From Basidiobolus meristosporus CBS 931.73 (Eukaryota > Fungi > Basidiobolomycota): a stretch of DNA of 36,169 nucleotides. The position numbers and the translations under genes are program-made. The stretch spans positions 1 to 36,169 of the forward strand of contig MCFE01000788.1 in assembly GCA_002104905.1 (NCBI GenBank), written 5' to 3'. Under the pieces are notes generated by a model. It had not been told where the DNA came from. It ran no database searches and was given only the letters and a program-made list of their open reading frames with translations. Below are positions 11,721 to 29,102 of the stretch, one piece after another (within the stretch, counting starts at the first letter, position 1; each line of letters begins with the position of its first letter).

Positions 11721-13022
11721 ATGTCCACATTAATAAGAATCCTTCTTATTGTTACAAGTAGTTTAGGATTTATAAGCTGCCTCCTAGTGCTAGCCGTTAA
11801 TGTGGCATTCATGCGGCGGAGAAATGCTAGACATTACTTGGTTATGAGTCTAGCACTTGCCGGTACAGTATAATGCACATAGCCCTGACAGCTCCGAATG
11901 AGATAATAACGATTTACGCCCCTCTAGATCTACTTGCCTCCCTTAGCGTGTTGCTCTTTTGCGTCCTGTCTTTGTTCTATCCGGACAGCCTGGCCTTGTG
12001 CTACTGCATGGGATACATATTCCAAGTTGGAACCCAAGTATGTTGCAATGCATTGCTCCCGGCCCAATCCCAACCTCAACTAAACCGTCACCACAAGTCT
12101 GCCGATTTAGCGATATGCGTAATTGCGTCCGTGACCTATATATGCTTGAAGAAACCGTTGGTGTGGTTCAATCGGCAAACGTTCATTCAGAACCACCTAG
12201 GCAGCATTCTGGCGCTCGTGTGGGCTATCCCCATTACGACTGCCACAATAAGCATCTTCGTGGCTGGCTATTCACCAAGTACTTTAAGTGGTTCTTTCGC
12301 TTTATAATCATCACCATAGCTAATCTACTTCACCATCATCATCATCATCAGTAGTGACTGGTTGGTGCTGGATTTCCACAAAGCCAAGCTGGGTAATCAC
12401 CTTGTTTGCCCAAGGTCCCAAAACTTTGCTGATCATTGGGTTTGTCATCCTGAACTTGAATCTGGTCAGCGTCTTAAAGCAATCCCGAGCAGAGGTGGCA
12501 TCTACGAGAATCAACTCGATAGAGTATACAAATGCTCTGGTGCATATCAATAACATTCAGGCCATTCGAAGCTCAACCCCCTTGGATTTTCAGCTTGATG
12601 TGACCCCAACATCAATGGTCGTTTTAGAGGAGCCAGCATCCCCTTCTCTCAGCAACTATGACCATGAAGAGCCTATCAACAAAGGAATCCTGTCCAAGAT
12701 ATGCACGTTTGTTCAAGGGAAGACGATATTTATTCAGCGTCAGCTACCGTGCACTCGCAAGAGCAACCGCAACTCACTAGAGAAAGAGCTGACCAGAGCG
12801 ATCAACTATATGTACATACTACCCACTATATATCTAATTATATGGCTACCAGTCATCGTGGTGCTACTCGTGAACATGATAAGCGACACCTACTTGCAAC
12901 CCACAACATGTTTAATTATGCCTTCCTGTGGCGGCGCTATCAACTGCATTCTTTATGGGCTCAATAAAGATGTGAGGAATGTGTTAAAGGAGAAAATTCA
13001 AAGCTGTTTTGAGTGCATCTGA
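11721..13022 (+). CDS. 7-TM G-protein-coupled receptor (cAMP-receptor-like/Git3-like, ~367 aa); exons 11721-11862, 11928-12037, 12098-12278, 12352-13022
   Basis: Seven hydrophobic helices are visible, with YLVMSLALADL in TM2, GYSP..GWCWI in ECL2, a long third intracellular loop, YLIIWLP in TM6 and GAINCILYGLN in TM7. Introns are 65, 60 and 73 nt (the last has a NAGNAG acceptor). Confidence 0.8.
12334..12350 (+). repeat. (CAT)5 microsatellite at the 3' end of GPCR intron 3
   Basis: caccatcatcatcatcatcag sits directly before the acceptor. The poly-His seen in ORF 11959-12354 is this intronic repeat. Confidence 0.8.
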
Positions 13023-18300: not shown

Positions 18301-18970
18301 ACGGGCCTGGTAATTACGAAGCCCGTTCGCATTGGATGGCATTTGTTTCGCCATATGATTGATCTTAATATTACTTGCATGTTGAGACTGATTTTCTCTT
18401 CCCATTTGCGGGCCCAATTTGGTAGTTTGATATTCTTTTTGTAATAAAGTAATTCCAGGCGTTCGCTCAAGTCATTCGCCTGTCCTGTCCAACCAAACCT
18501 CGCCCTATTAGTCGGTTCAGGAATGCCATTACACAATTGACTGGAGGTCCAGTGACTATAATCCACTGAGAACGTCGGCCACTGTCACCAATGGGAGCAT
18601 GGGTCCAATGATTCCATCGGCCAGTGTATATGTGCGCGTTTGAGTTAGATGAATTTCTGACATTTGCCACTGGTGGTACAGCCCGGTCATTTCCAATCGA
18701 TCATATCCCAATATGAAGTCTAAATACTGGTTACTGTATAACGAAGCCTGAAAAGATCACAACCGGATTGAAGGTGATGTCTACCAGATGCTGGTGTTCT
18801 GGGGGACACAAGGTTGCTTTTGATAAGGTCTCAGTACATGATGCTTTCGTGGAAAATCCCTGTGAATGGCTCATTCCGGATCATGATGGAAATATGTAGG
18901 GAGTGGTTTGGGTTCCAGATATATGAAATAACTCCATTCATCTTGGACTTCGCGCTCGCCTACCTATTTC

Positions 18971-18978
18971 TATATAAA
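18971..18978 (+). promoter_or_regulatory. TATA box candidate (TATATAAA) of the sugar transporter
   Basis: TATATAAA lies ~66 nt upstream of the ATG at 19045, followed by a pyrimidine-rich leader. Confidence 0.55.
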
Positions 18979-19044
18979 CTCGACGCTCCTCACCCTTCAC
19001 CCTCAGAAGTTCCTGAACTCTTTCCACAGCTCCTCACTCACCAT

Positions 19045-20435
19045 ATGGGTTTTTATGTCTATCTCACTGCTGCTGCCGCAGCCATTGGTGGATTACTCTT
19101 CGGCTACGATGTGGGGGTTATTAGTGGCGTCCATGTAATGCCTTCCTTCGAGCAGCGTTTCGACACTCAAGGCAAGGCGCTGAAAGTAGGATTCATCGTC
19201 AGTAGTCTTGTGTTAGGCTGTTTCTTTGGCTCATTTGCCGCCTCGTGGTTAGCCGATCGCTTTGGCCGCCGAACAAGCATTCTCATCGGAGGTATTGTGT
19301 TCACAATCGGAGGAGCTTTGCAAGCTTCTTCATTCGGCGTTGGCCAGTTGATTGCGGGCAGAATTATAGCTGGTCTAGCAGTTGGTTTGTTATCCATGGT
19401 TGTTCCGTTGTATCAATCTGAGTTGGCACCCAAAGATATCCGTGGCACACTCGTATCAATGCAGCAACTCGCCATCACCATTGGTATCCTAATCAGTTTC
19501 CTTGTCAACCTTGGCTGTGACAGTTTGGCTGGGGATGGAAGCTGGAGAGTCCCACTTGCCATCCAATGCGTGGCCTCGTTGATCCTGTCCATCACCATTC
19601 TGTTCCTCCCAAGATCCCCCGCTGGCTGGCCTCCCAAGGGAGAACCGAAGAGGCTTTGCAAGTCCTACGCAAAGTGGGCAACAAGCCTGATGAGGAAATG
19701 GAAGACATTAATGAGGCCCTCCGTCTGGAAAAGGAAATGGGCAATCCGACTTGGAGAGAGCTATTTGGCCCTCTCCTTCGTCGCCGTGTCATTATCGGTC
19801 TCGCTATCCAGGCATTCCAGCAGCTTACTGGCATCAATGCTGTCATGTACTATGCGCCAACGATTTTCAAGTCCGCTGGGCTTGATGGCACCAACTCGGC
19901 ATTGATTGCCACTGCCATCAATGGCGCAGTCAATGTGCTTTTCACCATTCCCGCCGTGTTATATGTTGACCGTGCTGGTCGTCGTCCATTATTGCTTATC
20001 GGGGCCGGATTCATGGCAATAGCGATGTTGATTGTCGGTACTCTGATTGCTATCTACTCACCCCGTAACTTCGATGTGATCGCCGCCGGATACTCCAGCA
20101 TTGCAATGATTTACCTGTTCGTTGCCTTCTTTGCCTTTACCTGGGGTCCTATTGGATGGATTTATCCTTCGGAGATCTATCCCACTAGAGTTCGTGCCAA
20201 GTGTATGAGTCTTACCACCGCCTCTAATTGGACCTTTAATTTCATCATTGGCCTTGTGGTCCCACCATTGATAGAATCTATCAACTGGGGAGTCTACGTA
20301 ATCTTTGGTGCTTGTGGTGTCCTGATGTTCATCTTTGTGTATTTCTGCGTTCCAGAAACCAAAGGGAAGAGTTTGGAGCAGATTGACCATATGTTTGGAG
20401 GCCGCCTCAACCTCGATGAAAAGAATGGAGCCTAA
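19045..20435 (+). CDS. MFS sugar porter (hexose/H+ symporter type), intronless, with a 1-nt deletion frameshift in the C run at 19616-19620
   Basis: Motifs present: GGLLFGYDVGVISG, DRFGRR, GRIIAG, PLYQSELAP..IRG, QQLTGINAVMYYAP, DRAGRRPLL, WGPIGWIYPSEI, PETKGKSLE. Restoring one C gives the conserved P.SPRWL motif and joins ORFs 18814-19905 and 19566-20435. Confidence 0.9.
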
Positions 20436-20884: not shown

Positions 20885-22503
20885 CTATCTCGAAGCCAGC
20901 CACTTCTCTTTCGAGGTGGGCCTGAGGATCCCGTGCATCTTCTCTTCGCCTATCGTGGTCCATTCACCGCCGTAGTTGTGGCCGGGCAGTACTACAACAT
21001 CATCCCGCAATGCAGTCAGCTTCTCTTGTATTGAGTGATACATGTCGTGTTTACATGCTCCAGGTAAATCCAGTCTACCGCAAGTGCCCAGGAACAATGT
21101 ATCCCCAGAGAATAACCGACGCTCGTTCACTAGCAAACATTGGCTGCCCGGCGTGTGTCCAGGGGTATGCAGGAATCGGATCTGCGTTTCGGTTCCTAGG
21201 GGAAGGACGAAGTCATCGGTGGTTGGCACGATTCTGTTGGGATCCAAGCATGGGTTCGATTCTCGAACATACTTGATGTCTTCTTGATGGATGTATGCTC
21301 GGACGTTCCCCCATTTCTTCAGAATCGTCGCCAACCCGGATACTCTGATCGGGAGTTGATCGAACGGCGGGGGCGGAGACCCTGGATTTTCCATCAATCA
21401 GTTGATCGATAAATCACGATTACGCATCGGCTACTCACCTCCAACATGATCGAAATGGTAGTGGGTAACAATCGCCCCTATACACCGAAGCTTCTCCCGC
21501 TTGATCACCTCCATCACTCCATGGGCGTCCCAACACTAAAGGGTGAGTGAGTACCACGAATATTCCTCAGTACCAATCAATCGAAACACGTACGGCATCC
21601 ACAACAACACACAGCCTCGATACCATGTCAGCGATGATGTAAATGAAGTTCTTCATTGCTGTGGCGTATTCGAAAATCTTGTTTTGGATCGGGTTGATGG
21701 ATGTGCCAAGGGCTATGTCACGCCCGGGAAGCAGCTGGAGTATGCTTATCCCTGGAAAATGTTCAAGGGTGTGTTGGTAATGCAATGGCCAGTCGGTACC
21801 ACATGCGACTATTTACCCATTTCGCCATTTTCCCTGTGAAATCGCGAGCGAAGCAGATTCATCTTGGCTTCTAGACATTTGGGATCCTGCATGAGGGGTT
21901 AGTCGAGAGGTACACATCATTTTGAGCTTCACCAATTACCAGAATTAGTGTCTTCTCGTAACTTAAGCATGCTTCCTTGTATCTCCTCAGACCCAGCAGA
22001 GATTCTCCAGCTCTGTAGTAGCCCTACGATTCAAATCTGTCGTTTAGTGCGGTGGCCCACGGTCCACGAGTAGGGGCAAAGCATACTTACTTTGCTCCAT
22101 TCCGGCTTTAGTCTGATGACTATCTCGGCATCCTTGTACGCCTCCTCATACTGCCGCAACATGCAGTATGCACCAGACCTGTTGGCGAAGATTAATGCTA
22201 TGAAATCCGTAGCATCCGTTTCTGTGATGGCAGGCTTGGACTTGATCAAGGCTCGGGTGTATTCCGCGACCGCCTCCTTATATGAATGCCTTTCGAACAA
22301 CTCGTTTGCGCGGCAAGTGATCCGATACAAAACTCCGTCAGAGGCGGCAGGGCTTTCGAAAGTAAGCGTTAATGAAATGAACATTGGCCGAACTCCAAAG
22401 AGTAGAAATCTGCAATGTCTTGAGGGGAGTACTAATAAGGATGAAGAGGCTTTGATGGATCCATCTCTCCGAATCGCAGCTGCTTTGAAAAGACGGGATC
22501 CAT
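20885..22503 (-). CDS. TPR-domain / metallo-beta-lactamase-fold (glyoxalase II-like) hydrolase fusion, 412 aa; exons 22503-22433, 22352-22091, 22023-21940, 21886-21817, 21751-21594, 21535-21439, 21381-20885
   Basis: Six GT-AG introns (80, 67, 53, 65, 58, 57 nt) give one open frame. The TPR part reads ANELFERHSYKEAVAEYTRAL / FANRSGAYCMLRQYEEAYKDAEIVIRLKPEWSKGYYRAGESLLGLRRYKEA. The MBL part has THYHFDH, HTPGHTPGS, SGDTLF and PGH. Confidence 0.85.
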
Positions 22504-24257
22504 CCAAAAGACTGACACGGAGTTTGAGGGGAGGAGGGGAAGGTGAAACCTAACTCACTTTAACCAACTCGAGGTAACAATCCTCTCTAATAACCTATTC
22601 TTAACTAAATGCGGACTCCATCCCTTACTTTTCTGACCAATATCAGTTCTCTGGAAGTGGTGCTGACGCTCTCGCTATGAGTTCCCCCCTCCCTTCCTCT
22701 CAAGCAGAGTTGCTGCAAAGCATACTCTCCTCTCACTGATGATGGAAACAACAAAACACGAAGGATCGAAGCAAACAGGTTCTTTCCAGGAAAGGGAACG
22801 TAGAAAGTGGAGCGATCTGGGCACGGGAGAGGGGAGAGTGTGACGAAGCCAAAGAAAATGAAAGTACCTTGTAATACGACGCTTGTTCAGTTGCATTTTC
22901 TGGTGTATTAGCTTGATTTGGTGGAATAATTACGGAGGGCTTTGAGAGGATCAGTCGAAATAGAAACGAGGAGCTGGAAATATTTAACGTGGAAGGTAAT
23001 CGATATTAAACAATCTAAGTAGCGAATCCAGGTTTCCTGGTCGAGGTATATATACCGCCGACGCTTTTCCACGAAGCCAAGGGCCAACCCCTTCTTTTAC
23101 CTGGCAAAAGAATAATACCTAATCCCTCCTAAATGTGCAGCGACAAGATACATATGCAGGGTAGAAGCCCAGCTTCGTCCATTCATGAAATGCATCCTTT
23201 TCATAATTCAGTCGATTTTGGTGGCTGTAGCGGGATGTGATTGGTCGGTGGCCTCTCCCTGTCGTTCATCTTTACCGTCGCTTTTGTCTTGGTCAATGAG
23301 TCCTGAGAAGCACATTTGTGCACAGCTATCCCTCCATTCATAAGATACAATGAAAGTCTATTAGCCCGAGTTCCAAGATTGAATCTATCCTTATGCAGAT
23401 TCCATCAACCAAGACTTTGATCTTCAAATTCAGGGCTGTTGTCTGATGAAGCAGCCAATGGGCCATGTATGAGGTAGGTATCTGGGAATAATGGGTCATT
23501 GTAGGAAACTGTGGGATGCCCTGGGATTGTGCCAGGCTGAGATTGGTGTGCGGAATAGCCGCCCAGACACAATGCTGTCACTCGCTCGATCTCGGGTATT
23601 TCTGGCCTCCATACGTGATTGTTTGTATGGTAGATCCGCGCCCAAGAGCCAAACAATCCGTCCTCGATGCTGGAGGCAATTGGCAGTTGAGCGTAGGCGG
23701 ATGGATTGGGGCTTACTGTAACGATAATGCCAAGGCAGGGCATCTCCGAGGCTGGACACATGGATTGTTAAAACCATGCCAAAAGCAAGCCCGCTTTCCT
23801 ATGCAGTTCAGTCCATTATGCTCGGAAGCCTCAACACCAGCCTCATTTTCTTTCGAAGCTTCATTGGTTGGAGCACTGGTGTGGCGCTAGCTTTCGTACT
23901 TGTTTATTGAATCTTCCATAACGACCAATCAGACACGGGGCAATCCAGAGTAACTTGAAAGAATTGGAATGCAGCCCTGGAATGCTAACCCAAATGCTAA
24001 GCAAACAATGTCTTCCCTATAACCCAAGTTGCCCCCAATGCCAAATCGGCACCAAATCACTAAAACCCAATTGGCACAGGCTCTCTTGAGGGGCTCAAGT
24101 TCGATTTAATCCTTTGTTAACGATAATGATAGTAATGGTGATAGTTGCACCCGTTACGAATGAACACATATTTGTTGATCAACAAACAAGCAGATCGATG
24201 GTGGCATTCAGCATTGAATTAGCTTCTCAAAGTGGAACATCACTTCCATGAAAATTT

Positions 24258-26966: not shown

Positions 26967-27217
26967 CTCTATGGTTGAACAGATTGGTCGAGCAACAAGA
27001 CTGGCTGATCTCTGTATCCCTTCCAGTGGAACATGAGTCTTGTACGGTGTCTTATTCTTGTCAATAATTCCGGTAGTGCGAGTGGGATGATTGGAGATCT
27101 CCTATCCCCTGAAGCGCTGCTGGGTATATATATCTTCAAATGATTCGTTTCAGCTTCCAGAATTGGTCTACCCTGCCTCGTCCGTTCTCCCCGCTACACA
27201 GCCATCAATATTTCGCA

Positions 27218-29102
27218 ATGGGCAAGGTTCCGCCCTGGTTAAGGCTATATCAGGATAATGCCAAAGAATTCTTGCTAGTCATTGCTTATCTAGTGTGCAT
27301 AAGAGCATTCTTCCATCTGTCGAGGTCCTTGATATGCCGTCAAAGTTGGTTTGCAAAGGGAGCTAGAATTGGCACCACCACATTACTCGGAATACCCGTT
27401 GTTGCACATCTACGAAGAATATTGCTGCCAGTTAGTCCACTCCTTGGGTTAACCATAGGCCAATGGGTGGTGATTCTATTGTATTTCGGCCTGGTCATAT
27501 GGTATTCAGTCAAGGTGGTATTCGCCCGCCTAACAAGAACTACCGATATCGCATTATCTTCCGGATATATATCCATAGCAAACATGCCGATAATGATAGT
27601 GCTGGCCAACAAAAACACCATCCTGACGAAGCTGCTTGGTGTAAGCCACGACAGCCTCAATTACCTACACCAAGCCTCAGGGATAGCAACGGCATTTACA
27701 GCAACGGTGCATACTGTTCTATTTAGCATGATCTGGCTGAAGTTTGGAAGCTTCCAAAGGTTCATCATGCTGCCATATGTCCTCTACGGGGTTGTCGGGC
27801 TCATCCTATTTATCATCCTGTGTTTATCATCAATAAGTTACATTCGACACCGGTGCTACGAGTGGTTTTTGGGAATCCATATCACAGCTTTCGTGCTGAG
27901 CATTGTGTTCGTTGCTCTCCATTTCTGCCAAGACAATGTGTATTTATTCTATGTATTCAGCGGATTTGCCCTCTTTGTTGTAGACAGAGCCATTCGGACC
28001 AGCCGAGCATTCTACTATAACCTGCTGCTTCGGTTGCACAGAACCCGAAAAGAAAAGATCCCCCTTGACAAGGTACAGTTGTTGCCCGGGAGTGTCGTAC
28101 GTATGGAATTTTTCAAGCCCATGAAATGGGCACCTGGACAGCATGTTTTCCTATGCATGCCTGGTGTTGCATTTGGGCAGTGGCATCCATTTACAATCAC
28201 GTCGACATACGAGGCAATAGAGGATAGTACGCCAGAGTGCTCTATAGTGGTTGTTATCCAAGCGCAAAAAGGCTTCACAAAGACTTTGTACGAACATATG
28301 CTAGCAAATTCTGGCACTCAACAGAACCTCCGTGTCCTGGTGGATGGCCCATATGGAGCCTACCATTCCATGCATAATTTTGAAACAGTCGTGTTGATAG
28401 CGGGAGGTACTGGTGCTGCGTTTACCATCCCCATCCTCTCCGACTTGATTCGTAGGAAGCTTCACGGGCCTTCAGTAACCACAAACAGAGTTCACTTCAT
28501 TTGGAGTATCAAGAAAAGAGGTGAATTTAGTTCAAACTATCAATCGTGATCTAGAGTAATGGAATACTGACCTCATTCGTTTAGCTCATATCTCCTGGTT
28601 TGTAGAGGAACTGCGCAAATGTATACTTTTGTCACCAGACGGATTTCTACATGTCCAGGTCCACATTACTGCGGAGCTAAAGGATGCGGCAACGAAGTCG
28701 TTAAATGATAGCCTCCTCGATGAAGCGAGCTCTTTGATAAGCTCCGGGGCTGATCACAAAGACTACACAACAATAACGCACACTAAACCAGTGCAGTCCT
28801 TGATAGATTTAGAATCTGCGGAATATTCCGAATTCCAGACGTATCCTCATCGACCAGATATTGGAAGCATCCTTGAGGATGCCTCACATATCGCAAGCAG
28901 TGATATTGGGGTATCAGGTTGGTTCAATGTGTTGGTAAACTGCCTCGCCTATTCACTGAACCTCTTGTTTTGAACTGTAGTTTGTGGACCAGTCAGCCTA
29001 GCGAAAACGGTGCGTCGATCTGTTAGTGAAAAAAGTTCCTTTTCAACGCGCCAGGGATCAACAGCAGGGATCTATCTGCACTGCGAGAACTTTGAATGGT
29101 GA
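27218..29102 (+). CDS. Ferric reductase-like transmembrane oxidoreductase (FRE family); exons 27218 (or 27140)-28520, 28585-28917, 28981-29102
   Basis: Heme-ligand His pairs (YLHQ..VHT; GIHI..ALH), the FAD site HPFT, and NADPH motifs DGPYG, AGGTG, VCGP and C-terminal ENF are all present. Introns are 64 and 63 nt. Two in-frame ATG starts are possible. Confidence 0.9.

Follow-up and report, generated by a model that had tools for sequence, protein, structure and literature searches.

A predicted TPR-MBL fusion protein of Basidiobolus meristosporus: a candidate chaperone-docked metalloenzyme of an ancient eukaryotic family

On the minus strand of contig MCFE01000788.1 of Basidiobolus meristosporus CBS 931.73 (positions 1 to 36,169; this whole stretch of 36,169 nucleotides is referred to here as the window), a TPR-like open reading frame (22031-22507) is followed by two frames with the sequence of an MBL-fold enzyme (21567-21785 and 20885-21397). 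Three questions raised by this arrangement are: (i) whether the frames are parts of one gene, and with which exons; (ii) whether the gene is of recent bacterial origin; and (iii) what a protein composed in this way might do.

The separate frames can be spliced into a single open frame on the minus strand, extending from 22384 or 22503, depending on the start codon, to 20885. As drawn in an earlier, sequence-only reading of the window, the gene has seven exons separated by six GT..AG introns of 53-80 nt each, and phase-aware joining of those exons yields 1239 nt with no internal stop, that is, 412 codons and a terminal TAG at 20887-20885. In our searches the exons were used singly, while the annotated protein of the same gene (P0167) and a paralog (P0001) represented the whole protein. 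A Pfam scan placed Lactamase_B in exon 7 (7.8e-12) and a weak TPR_2 in the frame that holds the second exon. Each of the translations of exons 2-7 is gap-free and collinear on the Basidiobolus paralogs P0001 and P0151; together with the stop-free frame, this bears out the proposal that the TPR and MBL frames constitute one gene.

Five of the six introns can be accepted because the P0001 gene has the same intron positions, phases and exon sizes. When P0001 is mapped exactly onto its own locus, its introns fall after residues 92 (phase 0), 120 (phase 0), 143 (phase 1), 196 (phase 0) and 228 (phase 1). The five supported introns of the window gene, all within 21382..22090 on the minus strand (22090-22024, 21939-21887, 21816-21752, 21593-21536 and 21438-21382; 67, 53, 65, 58 and 57 nt in coding order), interrupt the same codons in the same phases, and the exons between them measure 84, 70, 158 and 97 nt in both genes.

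The exons so defined follow the domain structure of the protein. The first coding exon of our preferred model (22091..22384, minus strand; 22352-22091 as exon 2 of the earlier model) specifies the N-terminus, TPR1 and TPR2, and its last codon is that of a clamp lysine; it is identical to residues 1-98 of P0167 and collinear with P0001 residues 6-92. The 84-nt exon (21940..22023, minus; collinear with P0001 93-120) encodes TPR3 and opens with G-Y-Y-R, which includes the clamp arginine. The 70-nt exon (21817..21886, minus; collinear with P0001 121-143) supplies the capping, or solvating, helix after TPR3 together with the two residues that lead into the MBL domain, and corresponds to helix 125-142 in an AlphaFold2 model of P0001. 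The N-terminal strands of the MBL fold are encoded by the 158-nt exon (21594..21751, minus; 75% identity with P0001 145-196), and the metal-binding motif T-H-Y-H-F-D-H-V-G-G by the 97-nt exon (21439..21535, minus; 88-94% identity with the paralogs). The last exon (20885..21381, minus; 75% identity with P0001) carries a PPPPFD insert, the remaining ligands (the H of HTPGH, the D of GDTLF and the H of PGHNY), the motif CGRLDLPG and the stop codon.

The first exon of the seven-exon model (22433..22503, minus strand) is doubtful, since it matches nothing in any homolog, and of the six donors its GTACTC departs furthest from the canonical form. The paralogs begin with M-S-L-T-R-P..APDG, which aligns to M-F-I-S-L-T..SDG from the ATG at 22384; this ATG lies inside the proposed intron 1, and that intron would excise the conserved S-L-T stretch of the N-terminus. 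A start in exon 1 (22503-22433) was rejected for these reasons, and a model of six exons and about 399 amino acids, beginning at ATG 22384, is probably the correct one, as against 412 amino acids if exon 1 were real. Introns 2-6 of the earlier model are thus retained, while its exon 1 and intron 1 are given up. We note that the upstream ATGs at 22503 and 22464 on the minus strand open a frame of 23 codons, different from that of the main ORF, that ends with a TAG at 22434-22432. Given a start at ATG 22384, the segment 22503-22432 would more likely belong to the 5′ UTR and carry this short upstream ORF.

GenBank already annotates the gene as one TPR_2 and Lactamase_B protein, namely P0167, of 377 amino acids ('Metallo-hydrolase/oxidoreductase [Basidiobolus meristosporus CBS 931.73]'), the residues of which match the window exons at 100%. 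With ATG 22384 as its start, the annotated model runs on for four codons into intron 2 and then lacks six codons at the beginning of exon 3, including the G-Y-Y-R with which TPR3 opens; it also keeps intron 3 unspliced and leaves out the 70-nt capping-helix exon at 21886-21817. Judged by the sequence comparisons, the public model is wrong in this linker (window 21752-22090, minus strand) and the earlier splicing is right there.

Could the join itself be spurious, with two adjacent genes wrongly connected, or could the locus be a decaying copy, a pseudogene? We consider this extremely improbable. The same architecture in a single ORF is found in more than 100 proteins, transcriptome ORFs among them, and the frame in the window is open across all exons. 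Of 60 near-invariant columns of the family, the window protein keeps 58; of the other two, one deviates only through an artefact in the P0167 model. Several family members are complete ORFs in transcriptome assemblies, which supports the fusion at the transcript level in orthologs.

The family is broadly distributed. With exon 7 as query and a cut-off of E <= 1e-30, a full HMMER search returned 62 cluster representatives; almost all are long proteins in which the match is C-terminal. By Pfam and source names, proteins with both TPR and Lactamase_B occur in Zoopagomycota (Basidiobolus, Syncephalis, Dimargaris and Coemansia), in Mucoromycota including Glomeromycotina, in Chytridiomycota and one aphelid, in the ichthyosporeans Creolimax and Amoebidium, and in bryophytes, one lycophyte and ferns; examples are ORY04160.1 and proteins of Marchantia, Rhizophagus and Creolimax. 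In B. meristosporus the family numbers at least five paralogs (P0001, P0166, P0167, P0169 and P0170). Among the best 120 full-length matches, none came from Dikarya, animals or seed plants, and because these groups are heavily sampled, their absence suggests that they have lost the family. Three Coemansia models (P0011, P0015 and P0019; 1000-1444 aa) have the TPR-MBL unit at their C-terminus, and represent either neighbouring gene models that were merged or a genuinely larger architecture.

Our literature searches found no paper on the combination of TPR and MBL domains, in agreement with the earlier statement that no characterised protein is known to have this architecture. The architecture is not unique, however, being common in the databases under automatic names. 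The sequence family is therefore not new. The novelty would lie in regarding it as a catalytic co-chaperone in which a TPR is paired with an MBL-fold enzyme.

With respect to origin, the earlier reading held that the MBL domain closely resembles actinobacterial proteins such as Mycobacterium Rv0634c, and that the gene was possibly of bacterial origin and later intronised. The two parts of this proposal fared differently. They were addressed with a tree computed in IQ-TREE from 112 MBL domains (short search, SH-aLRT support; no ETHE1 included), in which P0167 stands for the window gene. All 56 TPR-MBL proteins fall into one clade (SH-aLRT 100), and P0167 lies inside it (100), within a Basidiobolus subclade (97). 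The closest TPR-less relatives are indeed bacterial: the sister groups of the clade are MBL proteins of about 235 aa from Rokubacteria/Methylomirabilota and their relatives, with 45-49% identity over 85-95% of exon 7, whereas Elusimicrobiota sequences lie further out; these were the nearest bacteria that the searches recovered. GloC and GloB of E. coli (K-12 genome) are distant from the clade, GloC grouping with Bacteroidota and archaeal sequences. Twelve TPR-less sequences are also located inside the TPR-MBL clade, the deep ones including P0138 and P0080, and some of the twelve are fragments of fungal or plant genes. Exon 7 scores 128 bits against the bacterial sisters, 56 against human ETHE1 and 21 against human GLO2; on these scores, the family would not be nested in ETHE1/GLO2.

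The bacterial sisters, and the fact that gene transfer from bacteria has been reported in Basidiobolus (PMC7466969), might be taken to favour a scenario in which this genus recently acquired a glyoxalase II-like gene that was then fused to a TPR and intronised. The branching within the clade tells against it, because the family tree follows the species tree. Plants form one group, ichthyosporeans are sister to fungi, and chytrids and the aphelid diverge before Zoopagomycota and Mucoromycota. All eight Basidiobolus copies cluster together within the fungal part, adjoining Kickxellomycotina, in a clade that takes in plants and holozoans with a support of 100.

Introns shared across groups are the second argument against recent transfer. 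Most of the five intron positions recur in Rhizophagus and a chytrid: the three MBL introns are common to Basidiobolus, Rhizophagus and Spizellomyces, and thus to chytrids and Glomeromycotina, while the two TPR introns are common to fungi and the liverwort Marchantia. The phase-0 intron after the first coding exon is shared by P0001, Rhizophagus, Spizellomyces and Marchantia. Homologous exons are found as well, the 84-nt exon in P0001, Spizellomyces and Marchantia, the 70-nt exon in P0001 and Spizellomyces, and the 158-nt exon in P0001, Rhizophagus and Spizellomyces. A recent bacterial transfer into Basidiobolus is refuted by the MBL tree and the shared introns, and we regard it as very improbable; acquisition and intronisation in this lineage do not accord with a fusion common to early-diverging fungi, ichthyosporeans and non-seed plants. 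The TPR-MBL fusion is an ancient, vertically inherited eukaryotic family, and its enzyme is bacterial-like only in a deep sense. A bacterial origin before the eukaryotic radiation is possible.

As to what the protein might do, its TPR half resembles a well-defined class. Hop, PP5, CHIP, SGT and TOM70 hold the acidic C-terminal tails of Hsp70 and Hsp90 through TPR domains of this kind. In a PDB search, the second exon of the earlier model matched Hop first (9.5e-10), followed by SPAG1, RPAP3, SGT2, TOM70, PP5, CHIP and Sec72; the family profile gave 1.5e-49 with Hop and about 1e-20 with PP5, and matched CHIP more weakly. The domain can be assigned from its sequence to the Hop/PP5/CHIP type, the Hsp70/Hsp90-binding kind. 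The AlphaFold2 model of P0001 (pLDDT 95, pTM 0.90) has seven helices in residues 11-142, making up three TPR motifs and the capping helix, and the MBL fold begins two residues later, such that the linker is almost absent.

The carboxylate clamp reportedly consists of five residues, K-N-N-K-R in Hop TPR1 numbering. In the alignment of 56 family members, the last four columns are N in 47, N in 53, K in 55 and R in 50. The window protein has these four (an N in FANRS, the K and R in K-GYYR across the exon junction) and T in place of the first lysine, so that the clamp noted earlier is present in four of its five positions. That first column, which corresponds to P0001 residue 17, is K or R in only 22 of the 56 members: it is K in plant, ichthyosporean, aphelid and chytrid members and T, V or A throughout Mucoromycota and Zoopagomycota, where a K or R is conserved two residues upstream. 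The C-termini of the 56 members contained no acidic, EEVD-like tail that could bind the protein's own clamp.

Docking of the TPR on Hsp70/Hsp90 tails would be a reasonable inference from these residues. It is nevertheless conceivable that the domain has another role, either packing on the enzyme as a regulator, as in PP5, or recognising the C-terminal carboxylate of a substrate for the active site. The nearly absent linker, the pTM of 0.90 for the two-domain model and the poor conservation of the first clamp lysine are in keeping with such a role. So high a pTM points to contact between the TPR and the enzyme, and this packing might signify autoinhibition or the presentation of substrate instead. 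Nonetheless, the other clamp residues, N, N, K and R, are 84-98% conserved over more than 1 billion years of divergence, and all close solved relatives of the TPR bind Hsp70/Hsp90 tails. Moreover, regulation and docking are compatible, PP5 doing both. A TPR that is not a chaperone dock is accordingly quite unlikely in our estimation.

The chemistry of the enzyme domain is a more difficult matter. The motifs THYHFDH, HTPGH, GD and PGH are all present in the window protein, providing the ligand set HxHxDH, H, D, H of GloB/HAGH-type glyoxalase II. All seven metal-site residues are kept, and the T, H, H, D and H of T-H-Y-H-F-D-H, along with the remaining ligand columns, are invariant in the 56 members. 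The C-terminal helical domain with which GloB binds glutathione has no counterpart in the window protein, which ends 33 residues after the PGH histidine, where E. coli GloB goes on, and human GLO2 is the weakest of the three comparisons made above. The sequence-only reading had described a hydrolase in which the full binuclear site is kept. The ligands of that site are confirmed, but the set cannot decide between a hydrolase and a dioxygenase, because ETHE1, which also keeps the second-site residues, has a single iron and acts as a dioxygenase, with no activity as a glyoxalase II (PMC4383860).

Among solved structures, the last exon matched 9rhq at 4.4e-18 and ETHE1 at 5.6e-14, and the solved sequence relatives occupy a narrow range of scores (9rhq, which is unnamed, Myxococcus PDO, ETHE1, BLEG-1, Beggiatoa PDO and YcbL). 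In Foldseek, the order was persulfide dioxygenases (PDOs), then short glyoxalase II enzymes, with GloB-type enzymes last. By global similarity of sequence and fold, PDOs hence stand slightly above glyoxalase II-type hydrolases.

One may consequently ask whether the domain catalyses the reaction of ETHE1, a mono-iron persulfide dioxygenase; it would then convert glutathione persulfide to sulfite in a TPR-tethered, cytosolic form of sulfide detoxification. Among the solved proteins closest to it in sequence are Myxococcus PDO (4ysb), human ETHE1 (4chl) and Beggiatoa PDO (8zbd), which with 5ve3 are the best fold matches and near-best sequence matches; the top 21 Foldseek matches of the P0001 model are almost all PDOs; and the equivalents of ETHE1 R163, D165, H195 and Y197 are invariant in the family, as are those of the Fe ligands H, H and D. 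The local motifs, in contrast, are those of GloB and GloC. PDOs have the motif T-H-hydrophobic-H-A-D-H-hydrophobic-T/S (PMC6060420), in place of which the window protein has T-H-Y-H-F-D-H-V-G, as in GloB/GloC (DHVGG, against HADHIT in the PDOs compared). Likewise GRxDFQ (GRTDFQ in those PDOs) is replaced by GRxDLP, as in GloC, and the NPR stretch of the aligned PDOs is absent. The alignment to 4chl stops 45 residues before the end of that protein, and the query has only 17 residues left, such that the region of C247, essential in type I PDOs, is missing; a mitochondrial-type architecture is absent too. The family further differs from ETHE1 and the PDOs in its TPR and in the PPPPFD insert after the first motif. 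Finally, the neighbourhoods of the bacterial sister genes, which were inspected for sulfur and glyoxalase partners, contained no sulfur genes and yielded only DUF502 and an HtrA-like protease, a result that says little about the chemistry. We therefore think a dioxygenase rather unlikely.

A GloC-like thioester hydrolase is favoured instead, because the motifs are GloB/GloC-like and the cysteine-bearing C-terminus of type I PDOs is lacking, and we would put it, from its sequence, at slightly short of an even chance. The short glyoxalase II enzymes (GloC/YcbL, E. coli b0927 and Salmonella 2xf4; BLEG-1; TTHA1623) are likewise compact MBL proteins without the GloB helical domain; GloC/YcbL shares the motifs DHVG and GRxD[FL]P and has 37-40% identity to exon 7, and DHVGG and GRxD[LF]P are common to the family, E. 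coli GloB/GloC and the bacterial sisters. GloC nonetheless belongs to a separate and distant clade of the tree, and has neither a TPR nor the PPPPFD insert. Closest of the TPR-less relatives are the bacterial 'MBL fold metallo-hydrolase' proteins of about 235 aa (Rokubacteria/Methylomirabilota) and 9rhq, which have the same motifs but no TPR and no introns, and a proline-rich insert that is shorter or absent.

Two further features of these proteins may be mentioned. Directly after HxHxDHVGG, all eukaryotic members have the proline-rich insert, PPPP-F/Y-D and about 30 residues (window 21330-21381); in the bacterial sisters, as in GloB and GloC, this insert is either short or lacking. On all four Rokubacteria-type contigs, the start of a DUF502 gene overlaps the stop of the sister MBL gene, which suggests a conserved two-gene operon.

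The product of the gene is thus a single protein of about 399 aa with two domains, three TPR repeats and a capping helix being followed by an MBL-fold enzyme of the glyoxalase II/ETHE1 branch. The protein would be cytosolic; an N-terminal targeting signal is possible, the start codon being predicted. Its TPR groove would dock it on the EEVD tail of Hsp70 or Hsp90, or on another acidic C-terminus, and the metalloenzyme would work next to the chaperone, its substrate being a small thiol-linked molecule. The most likely reaction would be hydrolysis of a glutathione-type thioester, as carried out by the short glyoxalase II GloC; the alternative would be an ETHE1-like oxidation of persulfide. For this account as a whole, a two-domain protein acting as a chaperone-docked metalloenzyme on a thiol-linked substrate, we judge that the balance leans somewhat in favour.

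There is precedent for such an organization among the catalytic TPR co-chaperones (PP5, CHIP and Cyp40/FKBP52), in which a clamp-type TPR of three repeats with a capping helix is likewise fused to an enzyme. Enzymes tethered to Hsp70/Hsp90 by clamp-type TPRs (PP5, CHIP and the immunophilins) are central to the fate of client proteins. The window protein differs from them in that its enzyme partner is an MBL fold, a pairing that we did not find described in the literature, that the first clamp lysine is missing, and that chaperone binding is predicted. If the proposal is true, the MBL-fold partner would bring a new chemistry, the removal of thioesters or persulfides, to the repertoire of TPR-tethered chaperone enzymes.

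A bolder version can be offered, if only tentatively and as one that we hold to be unlikely: the TPR-MBL family may be an unrecognised catalytic co-chaperone, docked on Hsp70/Hsp90, that arose near the last eukaryotic common ancestor and removes thioester or persulfide adducts at the chaperone; animals, Dikarya and seed plants would have lost it, while in Basidiobolus it would have expanded to five copies or more. Conservation of the family extends from liverworts to chytrids and includes the tractable organisms Marchantia, Mucor/Rhizopus and Spizellomyces. For the locus itself, the practical outcome is twofold: the gene model is corrected, and a reading by horizontal transfer is rejected, in a genus where such readings are common.

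The window contains several other features, all on the plus strand. An MFS sugar transporter at 18814-20435 is divided between two ORFs that overlap and differ in frame (Sugar_tr, 4e-55 and 2e-85), a split that probably reflects an intron; it is convergent with the TPR-MBL gene and ends about 450 bases from its 3′ end. The ORF at 12354-13022 has weak matches to the C-terminus of a Gpa2-coupled glucose receptor and to rhodopsin-type 7TM proteins, and is possibly a GPCR exon. At 27140-28549 lies an ORF of the ferric reductase/NOX type, with Ferric_reduct, FAD_binding_8 and NAD_binding_6 domains.
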